Below are positions 20,526-44,459 of a DNA stretch of 64,000 nt, piece by piece. The position numbers were made by a program, and so were the translations under genes. How positions within the stretch are numbered: the first letter of the stretch is position 1; each line of letters begins with the position of its first letter. Origin of the DNA: Marsupella aquatica. Its lineage: Eukaryota; Plantae; Marchantiophyta. Where the stretch lies: contig OZ316898.1 in assembly GCA_973895155.1 (NCBI GenBank), positions 12,365,659 through 12,429,658 of the forward strand, read 5' to 3'. A model generated the notes under the pieces. It was not told the DNA's origin. It saw only the letters and a list, made by a program, of their open reading frames with translations, and searched no databases.

Positions 20526-21435
20526 GTTAAAACCATAATTTTGTAAAGTAAACCACAAAGGGAAGTTAGTACACCAGATGTGCACATTGTTGAAATTGTT
20601 TTCTCTCATTCTCATGAGAGAAAAGAGAATTCACTAAGGAGTGATTCAAAATGAAAGATTAAACATTTATGAGGGGAGCCAAATTCATTCAAAATACTCT
20701 AACTTCATAAAAGTTCACTGAAATTTAAAGGGGTCCAGAAATTAATTCAAAATAAAATTAATACAAATGGTTCACCTTGTTAAGGGCATATTAAAATCAA
20801 AATACTGGACACAAAATCTGAAAGCTGGATTCAACATTATAGCAGCTTCATAATATCCTCCAATGATGGGACTCGGATTATAGAGTTGTTGCTCGGGGGT
20901 CTCACTTCGCGAAAATCTCATATCACGTGCGACTAAGTATAGGGTCCGTTAATTGGGTTTCTCGGAAGACTTAAGAAGATTTGTGTAAGAACAATAGGGT
21001 CAATTTTATATGTTGGACAACTTGTAAGAATAATAGGGATATTAATATTTTTGACTATGTAGATGGAAGACATACAAGGAAGTTAGGGGGTCTTTGTGTC
21101 GGACTATGTAAATTACACGTGTCACTATATCATTGGTACACATGGCACACATAACATTCTCAATATATTTTCCTAAGTCATGTTTATTTTAACATGGATT
21201 CTAATTTGAGAATGATTTAAGTGGGTCTGGTTTTTTGGGGACTCACGTTTAGGGTTTGAGTGGGATTAAGTTTGAAATTGTTCCGTTTAACATGTCTAGT
21301 TTCCCTCAATTGGCCGCCCTTGTTAGTCTCCTCCCGTGTCATTTCCCTCCAATATCCCTTTGGCCCCACCCGCTGTTTGGGATGAGAGACTCTTTTGTTT
21401 GTACCTTGCAGCAAATGGTGTAAACGGGGGTCTAA

Positions 21436-22340
21436 ACGAGTGTGCTGCTGCTTGGAGCAAAGAAGGATTGAGAGAGAGTGTTGTGACCTCGGATGCGAGT
21501 GAAGAAGGATCAAGCGAGAGTGTTGTGCTCTCGGCTGTGAGTGAAGAAGGATCGAGCGAGAGTGTTGTGGTCTCGCCTGCGCTGCTGCTACGGCTGCTTG
21601 GAGTGAAGGATCAAGCAACATTTATTGGCTGCACTGCTGCTTAGAGCGAAGGATCGAGCGAGAGTTGTTGGCTGCGCCTTGGAGTGAAGAGGAGAGCGAG
21701 AGTGTTGCGCTCTCGGCTGCGTTGCTGCTGTTGCTGCTTGAAGTGAAGGATCAACCCAGAGTTCTCGACTGCGCGCTGCTACTTGGGAGTGAAGGATCAA
21801 GGTCGTTCTTGGCTACGCTGCTGCTTAGAGTGAAGGGGAGAGCGAGACTTCTCAGCTGCACTGCTGCTTAGAGTGAAGGGGAGAGCGAGACTTCTCAGCT
21901 GCGCTGCTGCTTAGAGTAAAGGGGAGAGCGAGACTTCTCGGTTGCACTGCTGCTTGGAGTGAACCCGGGAATGAAGGATTAGGCGAGAGTGTTGCGCTGC
22001 AAGGTTGGAGTGTATAGGTGCGCTATTGTCTTGGTTGAGGGAGTGTGCTACGTTCCTGTTGCTGAAATGATAGGAAAGTTTATGTGACTGCTGTGTTGTT
22101 GCTCAAACAGGGAGTGCGGGCGGGAGTGTGGCTGTTGCAAGTGCTGTGTTGCAGCTGCTCAAACAAGAGGTGGGTGCCGGGAGTGTGGCGTTGCTGCTTG
22201 TTGAAACGGAAGCTGCTACCTTGCTGAAACGGGAGCTACTAGCTTGCTGAAACGGGAGCGAGAGTGTTGCATTGTTGCTTGCTCAAACAGGATTGCGAGG
22301 GCTACTGCCAGCATTGCTGTGTTGCTCAACCAGGAGGTGG
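21436..22340. repeat. Internal tandem array: 43-bp unit CTGCTGCTTAGAGTGAAGGGGAGAGCGAGACTTCTCAGCTGCA plus degenerate copies, then GTTGCTCAAACAGG-type repeats
   Basis: Near-perfect units start at 21818, 21861 and 21904; about a dozen looser copies flank them. Confidence 0.85.
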
Positions 22341-24542
22341 GCGCTTCCTGCTTTGACGATCGTGCTTGCTTGCTTGCTATTGTTTGACGCTCAATCATGC
22401 TTGCTTGCTACTGTTTGAAGCCCATATGTACCACGCATGGCACACCTTATCTGGTAGCGGTCGTAGCCGATGTGTTCCATAGACATTGCTTGCGCAAGTC
22501 ATATGCATTAGATTTGCCCATCGAGATTTGAAAGTAGTTAGACCGGGGAATTGTGTTTCATGTGAACTCATGAGTAGTTCTAGCATTTCTGTTTCACATG
22601 CACTGAAGGCCTTTCTTGTACTCTGTCACATCATGTCGATAGTTCAAAAGTTGCTTTCATTTCCAAGGATGCCTGGTAAAAAAACTACCTTTTACCTTCG
22701 TTCCTACGTTAAGATGCGTAGAAACTCTACTGTGCGACTTATGATTTGTAGGAGACGAATAAATCAGCTCTCTAGATACGGTGATCGGTGCCCTCTCGTT
22801 GTGTCCTGTCCTAGCATAGCTGTGTCCATTCGCTGCATACGGGTCGCGATCGTCATGGTTGTTGCTTCAGGATTTAGTTGAGCATTTGGAAGCTGTCTCT
22901 GTCTGTTCCCATGTTCTGATTCAATTATAATGACTAAAGTTTTTGCCGTTTCTCTTTGCAGCGCTTTACGAACAGGCTCTGAAGCACGAGAAGAGTTTGT
23001 ACATCACCTGGACAGGGGCTCTTGCCACGCTTTCCGGGGCGAAAACTGGCCGATCTCCGAAGGACAAACGTGTTGTCAAGGAAGACACTTCCAAGAATGA
23101 TTTGTGGTGGGGCAAGTAAGTGTAAATCCTCTATTTCCGTGAGTTGATTGCAAAAAAGGGATCCACACTTGAATATGTTGTAGCCCATTGATGCGCTCAT
23201 CTCTGTAGTGTCTTTGATGTAGTAAATTCTCTATTTGGTGGTCTGGTTCTTCTACCTCCTCATCTTCCTCCGCCTTTGCCTCTTCGCGCTCCTCGTCGTC
23301 ATTGGCGCTGCCTTGGTTACGGCCAACCGATCTCCACATCCTGTCACTCTCCCATCTCTTGCTACTTCTGCCCTGCACCAATCAAAATTTGCCACCAATC
23401 CCTCCACACGAACACAAACTCTTCACAGCAGCCTTCCCCAAAACCACAAACCTCATTGAATTCTCCCCAGATGACAAAACATACGCAGATGCTGCGACTG
23501 ATGAGCATCTGCTATTCCCAAAATTCCACTATTCCGTTACTGACTGGCTCCTGGAATTTGGACCAGCAACAAATTCAGCACACACGAAATCCTTTGCTGT
23601 CGAGAGGACACTCCAAACCTAACTCGCTTTTTATCGACTGCCTTACACGGCCTTTCCTACTTTTCTGCTCCTCTCCTCGCCTCTCCACACCTCTCTCTTC
23701 TCTGTGTCAACCTTATGATGCACCCCGACCACAAAATCCTTCACCAGCACACTTTTACTTCTTCTACAAGCCAACGACTTCTCCCACGCAACGCGTTTCC
23801 ACAATGCAGCAATTGAGGCTCTTGAGTCTGGAGTTCCCCCTTGTTCCTTCATTCCTTTCGTGGATTTTGCTGCGCAAACAGAAGCTTTGGCAGTGAAGAA
23901 CATATACCCAATTTTGCCACGTTTGCCTTTGAGCATGGATTTTGCTTTTGCACTGAATCTATGATTATCATGGCTCCCACGTCACTCACTCCCTCATCAG
24001 AGCACAAGTTTCAAAAACCTCAGATGCTTCATTCGTCTACTGATGAGTAAACATGTGTTACCAACAAATAGCATTTGCAGAGGAGTAATTGCTGTAGCTA
24101 TGACCCAGCCCAAGCTTCCTCCAATGGTCAGCCAGATTGGATGCTCTTCTATGGAACACAATCATAGTGAAACACTGCATAAATTAGACCAATGTGTAAT
24201 GTAGGAAGGACACCATAGCTATGAGAGGTCCATGATCCTATTCAGGTTAGCTATTCAGGTTAGCTATTCAGGTCTGTTGAGCCCAATTATTTGTTTATTG
24301 CTGTCGTAACATGCATCATGGCCAATTGGTTGTCTTCAGTGCTTGCAGCATTTGAAACTTATTGAACTGGTGGTTTTAATTTTGTTCACAGGTTGCAAAA
24401 GCAATCAGTGCTTGTAGCTGTGAGCACCAGCACTTGCGGTGAAGCAGTTTGCTAGAGCACATACTGTACCTAGTGAATTGTAAGTTGCCTGTCATTGCAC
24501 GTCTGATCGCCTGGCCATTCACCGAGTAAAAAAAATAGTGCC

Positions 24543-24941
24543 ATGGCTAAATTGGGCATTACATTAGAAGCGAATTATGAGAAGCTCCTTTTGCAGCATC
24601 CAGATGAATGCTGCTGGTGCGAATCTTGTGTGAAGTGCAGGGTTGGTGATGGCAATTTTGAATGGTTCCATTGCTTCTGCTTGAAAATGCGTGGAAGACT
24701 TGTTACTAGGACATACATGGGAAAGCATGGCAAAGTTGTCACACGTCGCTGGAGGTGCTCTTGTATAAGGCCAACCATTTGGCCTCAAAATGAGTGTCTT
24801 TTACGCAAGATTGTCATCCCGGACACGCTTGACATTGTAGTCCTAGATAGTATTCCACATATAACTGAGCTTGATATTGTAGCCCCAGATAGTATTCCAG
24901 GTCAAGCTAAGGTTACAGCCCATGGATGCTTGACATTGTAG
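24543..24941 (+). CDS. Small Cys/His-rich transposon cargo protein, 132 aa, function unknown
   Basis: ATG in good context (GCCATGG); CCWCESCVKC...HCFC...CSC; repeated LDIVVLDS/LDIVAPDS; splice-like sites upstream (acceptor ~24391). Confidence 0.5.
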   Translation: MAKLGITLEANYEKLLLQHPDECCWCESCVKCRVGDGNFEWFHCFCLKMRGRLVTRTYMGKHGKVVTRRWRCSCIRPTIWPQNECLLRKIVIPDTLDIVVLDSIPHITELDIVAPDSIPGQAKVTAHGCLTL

Positions 24942-25283
24942 TCCCTGATAGTACATGGATGCGTTGTTCATGACTTGAGGTCCGGGATGACTAGGCCTTT
25001 GTTTGCAAGGCTGCAATTGTACCATCCATGATATATGAGAATAATTTTCATTCCCATTATGTGGCAAAGTTTCGCAAGCTGGCATTGTATTTATGTATGT
25101 CTTGGTTGGTGGGTGTCCAGGCTGCACTGTGTAGTTGACTTCATCTGGGAGGGAGGTTTGCAGATCATTGGAGCAGGTTTGTAACTACTTCAAATGTGGA
25201 TTTCTCCAAGTTCTATGGATTGCCCAGTATCATACATGTCCCTCTCATATGTGATGTGCTTTGTGATGATTTCAGTTGTAACC

Positions 25284-25943
25284 ATGCCGACAAGGACTTC
25301 AAACATAAAGAAAGCAACACAGTCCTCTTTAGAAGAGGTATTGTGTATTCCCTTGTTCTCTGAGCAAGAGATTCTACAAACCAGCCCTCATGTTTGTGCA
25401 ATTTGTGAGCATGGTGGGAAGTTGGTAATTTGTGATGGGCCATGTCACAGGCAATTTCATTATGTGGTTGGAGATGAAGCCCCTAATGACTCTTGCCCCT
25501 GTGTAGTCCTTCCCCTCCATCATGGAGGGAAGCCATGGTTTTGCCCAAATTGTAACCAGGACCAGGCCATGTGTTATGGGTGCCGCACTGTGGGACCGTC
25601 ACCTACAATTGTGCGAAAATGCTCTGATCATTTTTGTGTACGATTTTATTGCTTTGGGTGTTTGGTAGCTGCTGCAAAGTCCTGCCCACTGCATACATGT
25701 GTGACATGTTATCAGAGTCTTGAGGGTCAGATGGTCAAGAACATGGTACAATGTTTACGATGTCCAAATGCCTGGCATACAGATTGTCTCCAAATGATCA
25801 AAAGCAAAGGGTTTGCTCATGATAGGGACATCTGGGAACATGAAGCACATGGACAACAGCGACAGATGTTTTATTGCCCCTGTCATCCTATTGATCCACA
25901 CCTGAAGACTCCAATCAGGGACCACATTTCATGGCTCCAGTGA
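25284..25943 (+). CDS. Stand-alone EDM2-like composite PHD-finger protein, ~219 aa (ORF open from 25194)
   Basis: CAICEHGGKLVICDGPCHRQFH...WFCPNC, CYGC...C...C.RFY, CPLHTCVTC...CLRCPNAWHTDCL, and C-terminal YCPCHPIDPHLKTPIRDH. This matches the recalled EDM2 PHD cassette end (YC.EHEID..L.TPVRDH). ACCATG start just after a TTTCAG acceptor at 25275. Confidence 0.85.
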   Translation: MPTRTSNIKKATQSSLEEVLCIPLFSEQEILQTSPHVCAICEHGGKLVICDGPCHRQFHYVVGDEAPNDSCPCVVLPLHHGGKPWFCPNCNQDQAMCYGCRTVGPSPTIVRKCSDHFCVRFYCFGCLVAAAKSCPLHTCVTCYQSLEGQMVKNMVQCLRCPNAWHTDCLQMIKSKGFAHDRDIWEHEAHGQQRQMFYCPCHPIDPHLKTPIRDHISWLQ

Positions 25944-26442
25944 TCTGAATAATGAACAAACCTATTACTTAGGTTTCAACGTCTTAGTGGGGTATGAGCA
26001 AGGCATATACTTAAGCTGCATCATGGGTGGTAGTACCCAATTTTATTAGTGTTGACATTTTGTCATAATTACGGTCACTAATAGTGCTGCATTTTGATGA
26101 GCAAAAGCACTAAACCTCGGGAATTGTTAGAAAACTAGGCAAAAAGGATATTTTTTCTAAAGATATTTTATCCAACTTTAACGGTATATCATGATTTTCA
26201 CTGAATACATTTGCATGTATGATGGATTGCATTATAAAGTGTTTTGGCCTATTAGCACTTCTATTGTTAAATGTATGCTGACATTATGTACATTACTGAC
26301 ATGAGAATGTGTATGTTGTCATTGCATCTCTTGAAGATCCTAATGTGTTTCCCTTGTGTGTATTTCAAATGTATTTGTGCAGGTCTTTCTGTTATCGACT
26401 CCAAAAGCAATGGTGCTATGCATGTTCTAGATTTGTATTGCA

Positions 26443-29400
26443 ATGGCAGCCCCTAAACCCAACTCTGTTAAATTAATATGCAAAGTTGGGGATGACAAGG
26501 CTGATTTACCAATCTGTGTTTTGTCATTCAAAGAAGGACACACCCTACATGATTTTAGGGCTCGTATTGCCTCTACTCTAGACTTTGACTTCGATTTTTG
26601 GGATGAGAGACTTCCTGGTCGAGTGAAACTTGTACATGAGAAATTAATTGATCTGTCTGAGCTGGATGGAAGAGTTATTGTTGTACAACAAGAACTTGGA
26701 GATGGTGGGAGGATCCCACCAGTACCCTGTCATCCTTGCACTCCTGCATCATTGGGTCCAAATATTGAGACACCACAACTGAGGCCAACAGCACTAGCAC
26801 CCTCCCCTGTAAGGGCTTCTTTTGAGTCACAATTGATGAGAGATGTCCCATCAAAGCTATGGAAAGATGAGTGGATGAGGTTAGAGAAATGGGTACATAA
26901 GAAGGGTTATGGTGATCACAATTGGAGAATTCGTACCTGGGATGAGGGGACAGATGTTCGAGGGCATCTGGAGTGTCTTGAATGTAGGGAAACTTATGGC
27001 AATGCAGACAACTCTCAGAACCCTAAATCCATCTCCAATTGCTTTAGTAATTTTAAGACCAAACACTTGGTCTTCAATAAGCACAAGGATAACTATTGTC
27101 GGAGAAGGGGCATTCCTTCTACTTTGGTTCAGGTAGCAGACATCTCTGAGAAGCCAGAATATGATCATGCAGACGCCATCAAAGTAGGTGTTGAGATAGT
27201 TCAGCGATTGAATGCTGAGCTTGGGGATGATGGCAAACTATTCTCTATTGTTCCTGATCCCAGTACTCCTGAGTATGTAAACAGGTCTTTCCTGTTTAAG
27301 GTTCGCTGTACTGTCTGTGGAATGCTTCACACTGACTTGTGCCCCAAGAAGCTTACCTTGGAGCCCAATTTGAGGACACACTTAGTGAGTCGAGATCACT
27401 TGGATGCATTGGAGACTAGGCATGACACAAAAATGCTTGCCTTGAGGTCTGGGAAGAGGGGCAGGCCAAAGAGGACTGATTCTAGGGACCTACATCCTGG
27501 TCAGAGCGGGATTTTGAAGTTCTTTAAAGATGATGGGTCCCGGACAGGCAGCAGTTCAGGTTCAGGTTCAGGTGTGTGTGAATTTGTTGATCTTGGTCTG
27601 AGTTTGCTTTGCTGGGGATTATGGGTAGAGAGAGGTGTGCCTCGACTGTTATGGAAGGGTATATCTTATGATATTTCTGGCATTTTAGATGATCAGTCTG
27701 GGGGAATTACATGGCATTGTGAGCCAAGTTGTTGCTTGGATGTTTTCCATCCAAGTAGAGAGAGTGTTGTGAGTATAGCAGGCTGTTTTAGACACAAGGA
27801 TTGCTTGAGGTTATCACAGAATGGAGGAGGATTTGAAAATCTAACTTGTAGTGAATGTGATTCTATAACACTAGAAGATGATTTTCGTGGACGGGTGCAC
27901 AGGGAAGCGGAAGCAGTAGTCCACAGAGGGAGCCGAACCACTGCTGGTGGTATACGTTTGGATTATTTGACCAACACAGAGTTAAGAGATCAAGTGCACA
28001 ACCTGAACTCTGTGCGACGAAAAGAGCGTTGGTTGTTAGCTTTACAGGCTCAGAAAGTATGTGCCTTGAGCACCAGGAAACGAAAACTAGAGGAGTTGTT
28101 AGGAGTTGCAGCAGACAGGAAGGATTTGAGATTGTTTCTTAGGAGTATTTTGAATGGACACAGGAATGGTGCATTTGGTGGTAAGGAGGGTTTGTGGGAT
28201 TTCTTGAAGGATGTAGCTCACAATTTAGGCAGGAAGCCAAAAGGTAATCGTTACAGTAATAGGACTCGAGCTATTGCTCAGGCTATGTTCCAATTTGGGG
28301 GCCGTCAAGTTGCTCATTGTTTTGCACGAAACTTGACAGCCCCTAGCCTTGTGACCCTAAAACGTGATAGAGCAAAACTCACACCTTTTCGAACCGGGTT
28401 ACGGAAGGAAACCTTTCAGGAGATTGCTAGAGTGTTGTCTGCTGCAAAGCACTCATTGGGCATTGAGGGGGATGTGCCTGTTATCTTTGCTGAGGATGAA
28501 ACAAGGATCAAAGAACGCCCTAGGTAATTGGAACTGGACATTTTTCCAATTGTTTTTTTAATGACTTTACAAGTAGCACTTGGCTGGAATTGCTGTGATA
28601 TTGAAAAATTGCATGTCTGTGTTTCAGGTGGGAGGCAAAGTATGATACTCTCATTGGTTTCTGTGGACCTTCAGAGCAGCATGTATGCTCCTATGGTTTG
28701 GAAATTCTAGTTGGTGAAGGTGATGAGGGGTATGATAAAATTGTAAGTACATTTGAACAATGCCCCAAGTGCATGTATGCCCGAGTTGTGATTGTGAATC
28801 CTCTGCATGAGTCCTTACCTAAATTGGCTGTGTGTGCACTTCCAACTTGTAATAAGTTCACAGCTTCTTGGGTACGAGAGCATTGGGTCCAGTTAAAGGC
28901 TTTTTGGGATGAATATTGTAGAGCTATGGTAGGCCCTTTGCTTGGACATGCTAGTGATGGTGATGCACGTCGCCGAAAGCTGATGCTGGAAGATTACAGA
29001 GGGCAGAATGGATCATACCCAAGGTACGGAGTTGGGTGGGAAGGGTGGACATACTCTGTTTCAATTCTACCAAATGGAGATTTGTATGGCTTTGGTGACC
29101 AAGACCAACCTCATAATGGGAAAAAGATGATAAACCCCTTAGACAGAGTGTCTTCTTTACTGGTGCTAGGAGATCAACATGCATCTTTATCTTATGTAGC
29201 TAATGTCTACAATCATTATCCAATTCATGAACATGGCATGGCTTGGGCTCGGGGGTTTCACTTCCACAAAAATGGCACATCACGTGCGACGAAGTATAGG
29301 GTTGATTTATTGGTTTGAAGGGAAGACTTAAGAATTTTTGTAGAAGAACAATAGGGTCCTTTAAATTCAATTTTGAGACTTATAAGAACATTAGGGTCTT

Positions 29401-31333
29401 TTTAACCAAAATTTTGGAATATTCCAAGAATATTCAGAATATTCCAACTTTATAGGGGTTGAAAAATTAAAAAAAATTCTTATATTTTAGGGGGTCTGAG
29501 GCCTAAAAACGTCGCAGGGGATGGGGAGACATCCATATAGTGAGACCCCTGAGGGCTTGGGATGATGTGAATAGGACTGACCGGCAGAATTGGGCAGGTC
29601 CACAACGAATAGCAGCAAGAAGAGTGCAGCAATGTCTGAAAGATATGTATGAGAGGAGAGATGTACAACATGAACGAAGTTTAGGAACTCAGTTGTACTT
29701 GGAGATTTGTGCAGATTACTTAGATATTTTCTTTTCTCCAGTTCATGATTTGAGGTCCCGTATTGTGTTAGCATCCAAGGTTTCATTCTTTCTACGTTTG
29801 TGGAGATTGTGGTTGAGGTTTGGTGACCATTCAGTGGGTGGGAACTTTGCAGCACACACTGAGAAAGACATGATGTCTATTCAGGCTTTTCATGATGTTA
29901 ACATGTCATGTCATTTCATTGTGCTGTTAATTTGTGCCTTTCGAGATAAGTTCCCACATCTAGGTGTTCCCTTCCACTTGCTAGGTTCAGATTGTTGTGA
30001 GATTTTCTTCAGCAAGGTAGGAGGCATGAGTGGCCATGAGCGGAATTATGATTTTGGCTCTCTGTTGGATAGTGCTGTTGGACTGAACCGGCTTGCTGCC
30101 CTAGAATATGGACCAGAAGGCTTGAAGATAGGTCGTTCACATAAGAAACAAGATCATGTATGGGGGAAGATTCATCCTATAGGGGAAGGGGAGGAAGCAC
30201 CAAATCTACTTGACTATTCTCTCATTGAGACTAATGAATTAGTGGTTGCAGCCCTTAAAGAAGGTTTTGTTGCTGCTAAGGATCTTATGCATCAATTGCA
30301 GATGTCTCCACGAAGTTCCTTACCAGCAGCTAGAAAGAGATGGTGGACATGTCCTTGGGTTGTGGAAAGTGAGACCTGGCCACTAGAGGTGGTTCTGAAG
30401 GAAGCAATTGTTTGCAATGATTCTGAGGAGCAAGTAGAGCACCAACCACCAGACATAGGTCCTCGCCCAACTGGAGATTTTCATGAATTGGAAGATCCTG
30501 AGGATGATCTGAATAGAATAGATGCATGGTTAACAGAACCAGATCCCATTGTTGTTCCTGAGATGCATTCAGATGATGTACACAGAGATGATATACAGTT
30601 TGATGTAGACCCCTCAGATGAGCTTGAGACATTAGGTCATGAAGTTCGGCATGTGTTTGGATCAGTTGTCCATGCTGTAACTAATGTACAGAATCGTACC
30701 AAGGTAGTGCCTACTGTTACTTATGAAGGCAAGGTGATTTACAAATCCACTCTGGTAAGCCAGTTGGTAGGAAATCCGCATTTGTCAAAAGATAGGCTGA
30801 CAAGGGTGAAACAAGTGCTATACTATAGTACTGGCAAGAGAAAAGTGCAAGAAGTCAATCCTAACTCATGTTTTGTTGATGTTGGCACTGATTGTGCAAT
30901 TGCATTTGAGTCTGATGATAGTCCTGCTCCAAGTACTAGATCTGGAAAAAGAAAGGGAGGAAAGAATAAGGTTGTGGTGGAGGCAATCTCAGCAGGTAAG
31001 AAATATTTTTGGTTGGGTCGGATTGTCCAAATGAGACAGAAGTATGGCAGTAGGTGGGGCAATTGTCGGTCACCAATTGATTTGATGGATAGGCCAAATC
31101 CACTTGCAGGGCAATCAGGTAACATTTGTGAACTGTTGTTAAATTGGTATAGTCCTATTGGTAAGAGCAAAAGTGAATTCAGATATGATACCACTGATTT
31201 GAAATGGATGGATATTGAAATGGTCATTGCTAGTGTTAGTTTAACCATGAAAGAAGGGGTTATGGATCGTATCTATGTGTTGGATCCAATAGATAGACGT
31301 GCTTTGGATCAGTATCTTCAAACAATGGTATGA
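26443..31333 (+). CDS. P-element-like DDE transposase, ~1490 aa after splicing and MITE removal; currently interrupted by a MITE
   Basis: Exon 26443-28523, GT-AG intron 28524-28627, exon 28628-29247, then 29562-31333. Motifs APSLVTL, FAEDETRIK...WEAKYDTLIGFC, GHASDGD, DQPHNGKK (DxxH), DRQN, SDCCEIFFS. No other stops or frameshifts. Confidence 0.85.
29248..29553 (+). mobile_element. 306-bp MITE of the same family, nested in the transposase gene
   Basis: Ends CTCGGGGGTTTCAC...GTGAGACCCCTGAG; 8-bp TSD GGCTTGGG (29240-47, 29554-61). Both subterminal regions are homologous to the ends of 20892-31939. Confidence 0.93.
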
Positions 31334-31419
31334 ATATCATGTTACTGTTTAGTTTTTGAGAGTCTGTATATATGTTTTATTTTGTTAATATTAGTGGGTG
31401 TAGTGGGATAGGATAGGGG

Positions 31420-31479
31420 GTGACGGATTGGCAACTTGAGATCCTTTCTCAATTAGGGGTTCAATTCCCCTCCGTCACA
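31420..31479 (+). ncRNA. Compact tRNA-like (mascRNA/t-element-like) structure
   Basis: 7-bp acceptor stem GTGACGG/CCGTCAC; reduced D loop ATTGGCAAC; 6-bp stem TTGAGA/TCTCAA with a 5-nt loop; T arm AGGGG-TTCAATT-CCCCT; discriminator A. Confidence 0.6.
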
Positions 31480-31556
31480 TGTTACATCCCTCAACATAAG
31501 TTTTAAATGGAGTATGGATGGAGCATGGGATTGGTGATCAATGGGTGGAATGGATT

Positions 31557-31639
31557 ATTTATGTTGTGACCTTAAAGGCCATCCCACTTATGCACGTAAG
31601 GTTTATATTGGGATGACCTTTTAGGTACACAATATAAAT
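31557..31639. other. Imperfect ~30-bp hairpin in the transposon 3' region
   Basis: ATTTATGTTGTGACCTTAAAGGCCATCCCA pairs with TGGGATGACCTTTTAGGTACACAATATAAAT (one G:U, one bulge, two mismatches). Confidence 0.7.
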
Positions 31640-33147
31640 GATGCATTGAAATGATCAAAGTTTAAGGTTGACAAAGGTGCAAGAACTGTTGCAGGGCGTG
31701 CAATGTCTGACATACGACTTCACAAGGTACTGACATAGACTTATCTTTTCTTTCTAGGCATTTTATATTGATATGTGACACTTTACTTCACAAATTATAG
31801 GGGCAATACAATTTGGATTTTAGACTCTTAGAAGAAAGAAAGAGGGAGGAAAAAAAAATTCAACTTAATAAGTATGGGGGTCTAGGCATGAAAACGTCGC
31901 AGGTGATGGGGGGGTCCTCCATATAGTGAGACCCCCGAGAGTTGTTGTCACTTCATTCATGAATTTGCACCTTTTGTGCTGAATATCAATAGTTACAGTT
32001 TGGGGTTCAACTCCAACAGAATGCCCAACTAATTATGTTAAAGTGATGTTCTGTTCAAGTTCTTATAAGGAGAAAAAAATTCCAATTTTTGAACAAAGCG
32101 CAATGGCATTGTGGTTAGGGGAAGACCTACAGCAATGCAAGAGGGGAAGTGTATATTTTAAGATTTTCTCTTTTTGGCGAGAGAGGGAAGTGTTACCCAA
32201 TGTGGAGGAAAAGATGCTAAGAATATTAAGTATCTAGCTTTCTTTGATAAATTTCTGACCTTTACATCTCCCTAGATTTAAGAATACTTATTGTCAAATA
32301 CTGGTAAATGGGGTCTGCGGCTAGCTGGGAAATTGGCTTATCAAAGACCTTGCCACTTTGGACAAAAGTGTCCATTCAATTATACTTTTAGTTGGGTGGA
32401 ATTGTGCAAATTTTTGCACGTCTAAAAATTTTCTGGAGAGGAGTTTTCCATGAAGTTTGATTTTCTCAGAATTTAAAGAGTTCAAGGTTCAAAGAAAATG
32501 ATGCTCCCATCGACCAAGTGAATCATGCAACTCCGAGTGACACTCTTCTTGTTCTCAAATGAACAGTTTTCAGGAGCAAACTTTGACCTTCAACACCTCC
32601 TGTGATGTTCAGTGGGGTTGGTTCATCTTGGGCTATTTAGATGTGTCTTGGAAATATAGTTCCACCTTATTTAATACCTCTAGTTTTCATGAAGAATTGA
32701 GAGAGTTATGAATTTCTAGCATTACTCCAATCACTCAATGAATGTACACACTTTGCACTTCTGAAATTTTTGAGTAGCTAACTTTGACATTCAGTATCCC
32801 CTAAAAATACAATGAATCTATTTTTTCTGGGTTAGTTAGTAACTGCTTTGAATAATCTTTCCATTGAGCCTTATGTAGTAGTATTTCATTCAGAATGTAG
32901 AGACCTACACATTCTCAAAGATGACCATTTTGCTTTCTTGCCAGGTACAGTTTATCTGTGTAATATCTACTACATGAGAAACTAGGGTCTTGTTGCCGTC
33001 TATCTGGGTTGCAAATGTACTTCTGAGCATGTTGGCAAAGATGGAGGTCTTTCCAGGCTTCAATCTGGGTTTTAGATTTCTGATGAATAACCCTTTTTAC
33101 TTACATGAAAACTTGGGAAATAGAATGAGAAAATCTCCGTTTACATT

Positions 33148-42917: not shown

Positions 42918-43057
42918 ATTTTTTCTAAATGTCAAAGTTGATGAATGAACCCCACTTTGGGTGGGGTTTGTTACAAAAGAGAATTGTGTCAGGCAGGATT
43001 CGAACCCCTGCCCTGTTGGGCCCAAGTCTGCTCGACTACCACTCAGGCAGCATCTGC
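42918..43057 (-). mobile_element. tRNA-derived SINE-like element or tRNA pseudogene
   Basis: On the minus strand: A box TGCCTGAGTGG, B box GGTTCGAATCC in a stem, a 3' hairpin AACCCCAC/GTGGGGTT and a short A tail. No canonical cloverleaf and no clear TSD. Confidence 0.6.
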
Positions 43058-44459
43058 TGCACAGCTGGTAAGGCTCTTTAATTGTAATTATATTTGTTCT
43101 AGTGTCGGGCAATGGCTGTGGGCTACAGGCAGCCATATCACAAGTGGTACGGATTTCGACATTAATATGCATCGATATTGTCAATCGTGGTAAATCAATG
43201 TCTAGTAGGGCTAGAGATGATTTATTGCTTATGCAAAGTAGAGCTATTGTACAGGGGTCTGACCAAACCATTAGAATTGATGAGTTCTATAATTGTCTTG
43301 CCACAAAGAGCATTAATTATCCATGGGCTGATTAACATTATTGTGGCTGACTAAATCCGATTTGAGACCCGAGATGCGGGGGTCTTGTCCCTGACCAGCC
43401 TGGGAGGACTCCCATATGGTACTACGACTCTTGCTTGAGTTGGCCCTTGTGACCGCTCAGGTTGTATGTCCCTTCATTGGGCACTGGTCTTCATTCCTAG
43501 CTTGCATCTAAACGGCACGACGCGCTCTTGTTATATCCTCCTTGCAAAATTGCCTAGGCAATTATCATTAGCCATTCAATGAAAACACAATTTAGAGGAA
43601 GGCATGGTTACTAGCAACAACAAAACAGTACCAAGCAGAGTGACTCCTGCCTAGAGGAATCCATTTGGATTCAATCCATATCATTCAATGCCCCTCTTCA
43701 GATTTGTGTTGGAAGCCAATCTGATCTCAAAATAATCCCTTGATCTGAGATCAATATCGAGAGGTATATTCAAAATTTACGGATCATTATATGTTTTTGG
43801 CAACTTGAATTATAATAAGGGCAAGACTAATGGGTAGAAATTAATCCGTGGACCCCCATGTTCATCCAAAGAATGTGTGTTTGATGAAGTGAAATCAATT
43901 TTCAACAAGGCGGTAATCGACGGTTTGGAGTCTCCCGATGGTCTTGGTGTGTGCTCGTACAAAAGAAAATGCTCAAAAGATAGAGGAGATTTATCAACGG
44001 AAGGTTGAATATAGAGGAATTGAGTTTTTTGACGGTTTTTGCTTACACATTGGAGAAATTGTGTTTCTATCATTCATGATTGATTGTTTGTGAGTTACAT
44101 TGAGCATTACTGCAACAAGACAGACTAGAGGACAACACTTAGCTATTGGCAAAAGAGCGCTTGTTGATTTGGTGGGAAGAACACACAAAACAAACAAGTC
44201 ATCGCTTCACATGAAGGATTTGTAGTTTTTTTATTTAAGAAAGCTATGGTGTGAAAGAGAGACCAACGATTGTTTCTTTGACATAGAGGCTGCATTTGGC
44301 GTCAACCTATGTTCAGAGTGAGCTTCAGTTGAAGACTAGAGGAATGCGAACAATTCAAGTTGGGAAGCAAGCATTGTGGACAAGGGATGGCGACGTAATC
44401 AAAGAAATCAATTTTCAACGGCTAAGTTTGTGACGGTGATGAGATTGTGATATCTCTTA

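Follow-up and report, generated by a model that had tools for sequence, protein, structure and literature searches.

Why should a tRNA-shaped fold stand shortly after a transposase gene in a liverwort, and does the gene make use of it? The fold comprises 59 nt (31420–31478) and the discriminator base A31479, as delimited by reading the plus strand of the window, i.e., the whole 64-kb stretch of DNA that was analysed here. It starts 86 nt past the stop codon TGA (31331–31333) on the sense strand of the transposase, a distance that had been given correctly in the sequence-only reading of this locus. In that reading, the fold was proposed to act in the manner of MALAT1, with tRNA-processing enzymes making the 3′ end of the transposase mRNA. 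The explanation favoured here, to which we assign about an even chance of being right, is a different one: the fold would be a degenerate tRNA-derived relic, a passenger in the 3′ non-coding part of the transposon and without a role for the element.

Around the fold, a P-like DNA transposon is present in full (20892–31939), with 15-bp terminal inverted repeats (TIRs) and an 8-bp TSD. The 5′ TIR (20892–20906, plus strand) is preceded by the TSD AGTTGTTG at 20884–20891, and the 3′ TIR (31925–31939, plus strand) is followed by the same TSD at 31940–31947, both being recognised by self-comparison and in the sequence; TIRs with an 8-bp TSD are as expected for the P superfamily. The coding region consists of three long frames (26443–28527, 28698–29318, and 29540–31333). 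The last of these, on the plus strand and ending in the stop codon at 31331–31333, is the C-terminal long ORF (597 aa) of a P-like transposase according to the ORF list, its homologues, and a Foldseek search with a homologue. No sequence match to Pfam or the PDB was obtained for these ORFs, and no exact match to the ORFs of the window was present in the sequence collection. Homologues of the 597-aa ORF are hypothetical proteins of Riccia sorocarpa and R. fluitans as well as proteins on further liverwort-like contigs. The AlphaFold model of the closest homologue (P0001) is poor (mean pLDDT 57), and its top Foldseek matches are Drosophila P element transposase (6p5a, prob 0.95, E 0.054; 6pe2, prob 0.94, E 0.16). 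With the TIRs, the 8-bp TSD, and these best, if weak, structural matches of the homologue, the label “transposase” carried over from the sequence-only reading is reasonable.

A MITE of 306 bp (29248–29553), assembled from the two ends, 5′ and 3′, of the host element itself and with an 8-bp TSD (GGCTTGGG), interrupts the coding region of the transposase where the second long frame gives way to the third, and this copy of the transposon is therefore dead. As the copy is dead yet otherwise little decayed, the intact stems of the fold are uninformative with respect to selection. Two further features of the element were recorded alongside. Arrays of 42–43-nt tandem repeats (families D1–D3 and D5) occupy 21450–21990 of the window, in the 5′ part of the transposon before the coding region. 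An ORF of 249 aa (25194–25943), located inside the element and upstream of the transposase frames, encodes NSD-type variant PHD fingers (PF23004, E 1e-7) and is a putative cargo or accessory gene.

The tRNA-shaped element (31420–31479, plus strand) was supported by its sequence, its MFE fold, sub-cut-off Rfam scores, and a descriptor search in which it was the sole match in the window. The acceptor stem is formed by a 5′ strand GTGACGG (31420–31426) and a 3′ strand CCGTCAC (31472–31478), giving seven Watson–Crick pairs without a mismatch. The T arm (31455–31471; sequence, Rfam, and pattern search) is composed of AGGGG (31455–31459), the loop TTCAATT (31460–31466), and CCCCT (31467–31471). It is a canonical 5-bp arm that includes the full Pol III B-box consensus GGTTCAATTCC, and it lies directly inside the acceptor stem, so forming a stacked minihelix; the 7-bp acceptor, the 5-bp T stem, and a T loop of the type TTCRANN with G53–C61 are all present. 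A D stem is absent, and nine unpaired bases separate the acceptor from the inner hairpin. This reduced, stemless D region (31427–31435; sequence and fold) carries TTGGCA at 31428–31433, the TTGG of which sits at the expected G18/G19 position, and it is treated as a local end in both Rfam models. The inner, anticodon-like hairpin (31436–31452; fold prediction) pairs the strands 31436–31441 and 31447–31452 and can be read in two ways: six base pairs may enclose a loop of 5 nt, or five may enclose the 7-nt loop ATCCTTT, in which case a T falls at the U33 position. CCA is not encoded after the fold, and the ORFs overlapping it are 36 aa or shorter. The architecture described beforehand, i.e., a 59-nt fold with a 7-bp acceptor, a 5-bp T stem, a TTCAATT loop, TTGGCA, and a short anticodon-like arm, was thus borne out by both the sequence and the MFE fold.

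When the 60-mer was folded in isolation, its MFE structure was exactly the one described (−20.7 kcal/mol, z −2.8), and this structure was retained in a context of 105 nt. In a context of 327 nt, the acceptor stem was lost from the MFE structure, and its 5′ strand together with the preceding G tract paired with the U-rich stretch upstream. The G-rich tract directly 5′ of the fold (31396–31419, plus strand) contains G runs of 3, 3, 2, and 4 and has no significant structure of its own; like the missing A-rich tract further upstream, it is as the sequence-only reading had it. Since such an A-rich tract is lacking, nothing in this region resembles the protective triple helix of MALAT1. The segment that separates the stop codon from the G tract (31334–31395, plus strand) folds weakly, and its first 60 nt are rich in U and UG and contain UGUA motifs. 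From its composition, this stretch appears to resemble an ordinary plant polyadenylation region and is a candidate for the ordinary poly(A) signal region of the transcript; a normal poly(A) site may accordingly be located shortly before the fold. The whole segment that would become the mRNA 3′ end after RNase P cleavage (31334–31419) folded no better than shuffled sequences (−9 kcal/mol, z +1.09).

No match at the Rfam gathering threshold was obtained anywhere in the 64-kb window. On the fold, the tRNA model (RF00005) reached 20.8 bits in a local scan against a cut-off of 29, and the mascRNA-menRNA model (RF01684) reached 23 bits against a cut-off of 42.5 (E 0.026, 501-nt search), the latter match spanning model positions 1–56. 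Both alignments included the acceptor and T arms only, with the D and anticodon regions as local ends. ARAGORN reported zero tRNA genes at default settings, and its mitochondrial, D-armless modes likewise made no call at default settings. At a 90% threshold, which gives 0.77 false calls per shuffled window, a 75-nt tRNA-Arg(CCT) starting from 31405 was returned, with a poor acceptor stem. Because Rfam aligned only the acceptor and T arms and the default ARAGORN run was blank, the evidence for tRNA-likeness resides in the minihelix and the GG of the D region. Compared with a tRNA gene, the fold lacks a gathering-level Rfam score, a cloverleaf called by a tRNA finder at default settings, and a D stem; compared with mascRNA-menRNA, it lacks a gathering-level score and the upstream protective triple helix.

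The frequency with which such a fold arises by accident was estimated with a descriptor comprising a T loop TTCRANN, a 5-bp T stem, and an adjoining 7-bp acceptor at a total length of 50–95 nt. Rates are given per 64-kb window on both strands of dinucleotide-shuffled sequence, except for the figure with the full B-box, which comes from a composition model. The loose descriptor with G–U pairs allowed was matched 0.18 times per window by chance. With all 12 pairs Watson–Crick, as in the fold, the rate was 0.0027, and the additional demand for an inner hairpin and for GG in the D region brought it to 0.0013. Further requiring the full B-box GGTTCAATTCC lowered the expectation to ~3.6e-5 per window, i.e., to ~0.02 over ~546 windows recorded from this genome. 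In the 64-kb window, the fold is the only match to the descriptor. It exceeds chance for one genome, while a few such matches are still to be expected across very many windows. An expectation of ~4e-5 to 3e-3 per window means that the fold is probably tRNA-derived.

Seven related elements were available for comparison, with protein identities of 32–62% over the aligned parts: one represented by the contigs L001 and L002 (62%), L004 (54%), L003 and L008 from Riccia sorocarpa, and L005, L006, and L007 (32–53%). The transposases of these relatives finish within a few residues of the C-terminus of the window ORF, so that its stop codon is the conserved one. Nucleotide similarity to 31334–31939 was absent in all seven, and a tRNA-like fold after the stop codon was absent in each of the six relatives with 3′ flank sequence, as determined by reading, ARAGORN, and the descriptor. 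The fold is hence not part of the conserved design of the wider group. A search with the C-terminal 150 aa yielded a single match (P0046, 55% identity), whose contigs end before the 3′ UTR. Within the window, neither BLAST of 31300–32000 nor a pattern search allowing two mismatches revealed a second copy.

Two observations were made on the 3′ flanks of the relatives. Downstream of the transposase of L003 (10800–11400; Riccia sorocarpa CM100800.1), a short palindrome recurs many times (GGGACGTTCAGTCCCG and variants of it) with no tRNA-like fold, and these repeats may be subterminal binding-site arrays. The contigs L001 (5802–5962) and L002 (2862–3008) carry the same intact relative and stem from different sequencing runs; they end within 13 nt of each other, ~150–160 nt past the stop codon, and this shared end might mark either where a transcript stops or the border of a repeat.

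Outside the group of related transposons, the exact 3′ half of the fold had no match in metagenome contigs. A pattern combining TTGGCA with the T arm was found five times in metagenomes, and all five matches were set aside as ordinary bacterial or phage tRNAs. In prokaryotic genomes, the 3′ half gave four matches, two of which are Chloroflexi tRNA-His genes (L014, 4123–4197; L016, 1305–1379) with an identical acceptor (GTGACGG/CCGTCAC) and nearly the same T arm. Since the same acceptor/T-arm half occurs in genuine bacterial tRNAs, the design of the fold is that of real tRNAs, which does not imply ancestry. The base preceding the fold is G31419, as is G-1 in tRNA-His; the resemblance to tRNA-His, including this base, is probably a coincidence.

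The 460 nt between the end of the fold and the 3′ end of the element are non-coding. They contain, 22 nt past the discriminator, a run of four T (31501–31504, plus strand) that by its sequence might serve as a weak Pol III terminator. At 70 nt downstream of the fold, a self inverted match revealed a stable imperfect hairpin of ~45 bp (31549–31647, plus strand; −47.5 kcal/mol, z −9.2). In Rfam this hairpin had only weak, miRNA-precursor-like matches, and it could be a foldback, a miRNA-like locus, or a binding structure. With regard to internal promoter elements, the B-box of the fold is perfect and the A-box is partial, the latter being represented either by TGGC within the fold or by GTAGTGG upstream of it (31400–31406). 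Another B-box was noticed in the window on the minus strand (42990–43075), where an A-box-like TGAGTGG and the B-box GGTTCGAATCC lie ~40 nt apart and are followed by a T run, so that the locus looks by eye like a tRNA or SINE head; as a tRNA it was rejected, with no Rfam tRNA match around ~43006 at E-values up to 10.

How the fold came to its place can be pictured as follows under the favoured explanation. A tRNA gene, a tRNA pseudogene, or a fragment of a SINE head would have been captured by the transposon or inserted into it, would have lost the D stem and a normal anticodon arm but kept its minihelix of acceptor and T arm as well as the D-loop GG, and would later have travelled with this transposon copy or lineage. 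For the transposase mRNA, ordinary polyadenylation within the U-rich stretch immediately before the fold would be the most likely fate, and any cutting of a transcribed fold by RNase Z (perhaps also by PRORP) would be a side effect. We infer the tRNA derivation from the low expectation for an all-Watson–Crick acceptor joined to a canonical T arm whose B-box is complete, and the recurrence of the acceptor/T-arm 3′ half in genuine bacterial tRNAs, e.g., Chloroflexi tRNA-His, is in line with it. The independence of the element from the fold is suggested by the single copy in the window, by related elements with 32–62% identical transposases that show no 3′ similarity and, in six of six checked flanks, no fold, by the absence of a protective structure upstream of the would-be RNase P site, and by the state of this copy, in which intact stems are no sign of selection. 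Against a relic, neither a parent tRNA nor a SINE family was found, and no convincing TSDs flank the fold. A SINE-type insertion was tried and rejected, the only flanking repeat being the 8-nt CATGTTAC (at 31338 and 31478), for which 0.4 occurrences are expected by chance, and a tail being absent. The D and anticodon regions, moreover, do not align to the tRNA model, and this is also how a chance match would look. An unrelated sequence that meets the acceptor/T-arm pattern by accident was therefore weighed as well, and we regard it as unlikely, though the likeliest of the competing explanations. It would account for a match in which only the pattern-defining parts fit tRNA models, for a loose pattern that turns up 0.18 times per window and whose rate the inner features lower only twofold, and for an ARAGORN cloverleaf that appears only where shuffled windows produce calls too; among the very many windows that were read, some accidental all-Watson–Crick matches are to be expected. 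The expectation for 12 Watson–Crick pairs in a single window, the ~0.02 occurrences with a full B-box over the ~546 windows, and the placement of TTGG at the G18/G19 position speak against an accident.

The sense-strand placement immediately past the stop codon and the TTGG, which could form the tRNA elbow, are at odds with a mere passenger, as they are what a processing signal would need. In the corresponding explanation, the fold is a signal of the mascRNA or t-element type. PRORP would cut between 31419 and 31420 and leave a non-polyadenylated 3′ end on the transposase mRNA, and RNase Z would cut after A31479; we consider this improbable. The accompanying release of a ~60-nt tRNA-like RNA, possibly with CCA added, is held to be just as doubtful, and so is the broader version in which the fold is a tRNA mimic of the transposon 3′ UTR, with PRORP and RNase Z ending or regulating the transposase mRNA and possibly freeing the downstream hairpin. 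The shape does suit cleavage by RNase Z and perhaps also by PRORP: a 7-bp acceptor joined to a canonical T arm, a shortened D loop that keeps its GG, a discriminator A, and no encoded CCA together make up the architecture of minimal substrates of RNase P and RNase Z. The fold lies on the sense strand at 86 nt past the stop codon and is retained in the 105-nt context. Processing of this kind is established for MALAT1/NEAT1 and plant mitochondrial t-elements (PMC11658184, PMC1920247), and in Arabidopsis GUT15 (PMC6152437) a nuclear tRNA-like RNA is made by way of Pol II. On the other side stand the related elements that lack the fold by both nucleotide and fold comparison, the lack of a triple helix or any other stable 3′-end structure upstream (z +1.09), the loss of the acceptor stem in the 327-nt MFE structure, the upstream U/UG-rich stretch that would pass for a poly(A) signal, and two Rfam scores that are below cut-off and derive from the minihelix alone. 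Altogether, the tested evidence does not favour processing and does not refute it either, and the probability that we attach to it is low.

Lower still is our estimate for a Pol III/TFIIIC element, in which the B-box and a weak A-box would recruit TFIIIC. This might yield a short RNA ending at the T4 run, or a read-through RNA from which RNase Z frees the hairpin, or the site might act as a chromatin boundary for the transposon, all of which we consider quite unlikely. A layout with a tRNA-like part followed by a hairpin is known from the tRNA-miRNA units of MHV68. The perfect B-box, the T4 run 22 nt downstream, the AT-rich region upstream, and the very stable hairpin at 70 nt (−47.5 kcal/mol, z −9.2) would all fit such an element. 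The A-box within the fold, however, is poor and only a short distance from the B-box, the A-box-like motif upstream lies outside the fold, and the T4 run would halt Pol III ahead of the hairpin; the comparable tRNA-like of GUT15 is, in addition, not transcribed by Pol III (PMC6152437).

As it stands, the fold reads as a well-formed, isolated tRNA-like relic in a liverwort transposon, which offers a concrete target for a comparison of copies and a check of RNA ends. If processing were true, no earlier case of maturation via tRNA enzymes would be known for a transposon or for a nuclear protein-coding transcript of a plant; a transposon mRNA matured by the tRNA machinery was not described in the literature searched. 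Were the fold functional, 3′-end formation of the MALAT1 type, so far a matter of plant organelles and of two lncRNAs of vertebrates, would also reach a nuclear, protein-coding transposon mRNA of a land plant, and there would be an easy way to study how transposons adjust their expression.

Among known systems, mascRNA/menRNA (RF01684) share with the fold a 7-bp acceptor that stacks on a canonical T arm, a short D region devoid of a stem, a small anticodon-like hairpin, a length of ~59–61 nt, and a location on the 3′ side of a unit transcribed by Pol II. The D region of mascRNA carries UUGGCA, an apparent parallel to the TTGGCA of the fold. The mascRNA/menRNA, however, belong to vertebrate nuclear lncRNA, whereas the fold belongs to the mRNA of a plant transposon, and unlike MALAT1 it has neither an A-rich tract nor a U-rich triple helix upstream, that stretch folding weakly. 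Apart from NEAT1 and MALAT1, no lncRNA is described as being matured by the tRNA machinery (PMC12941219). In plant mitochondria, t-elements are tRNA-like structures beside protein-coding genes, where cleavage by RNase P and RNase Z sets the mRNA ends, and they are CCA-tailed and not aminoacylated (PMC1920247, PMC11658184). They are mitochondrial and clearly homologous to particular tRNA genes, while the fold has no parent tRNA that was found and lies in a nuclear-type transposon bounded by TIRs and TSD, relatives of which are on Riccia nuclear chromosomes. Arabidopsis GUT15 provides a plant nuclear tRNA-like with CCA, the source of which is a Pol II transcript and not autonomous transcription by Pol III (PMC6152437); it is intronic in a lncRNA and affects splicing, in contrast to the fold, which follows the stop codon of a transposase ORF.

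With scores below cut-off, no triple helix, and a location outside an organelle, the fold departs from the mascRNA and t-element systems on these tested points. Like tRNA pseudogenes and SINE heads, it combines the B-box consensus with partial tRNA features in a degenerate state and in repeat-rich DNA. It differs from a SINE in being single-copy in the window and in having no SINE body, tail, or credible TSD, and from SINE heads, which usually keep the D stem bearing the A-box, in having no D stem. A tRNA pseudogene or SINE head is nevertheless the most likely class for the fold, which in shape is closest to mascRNA/menRNA and in its proposed use to the t-elements and GUT15.
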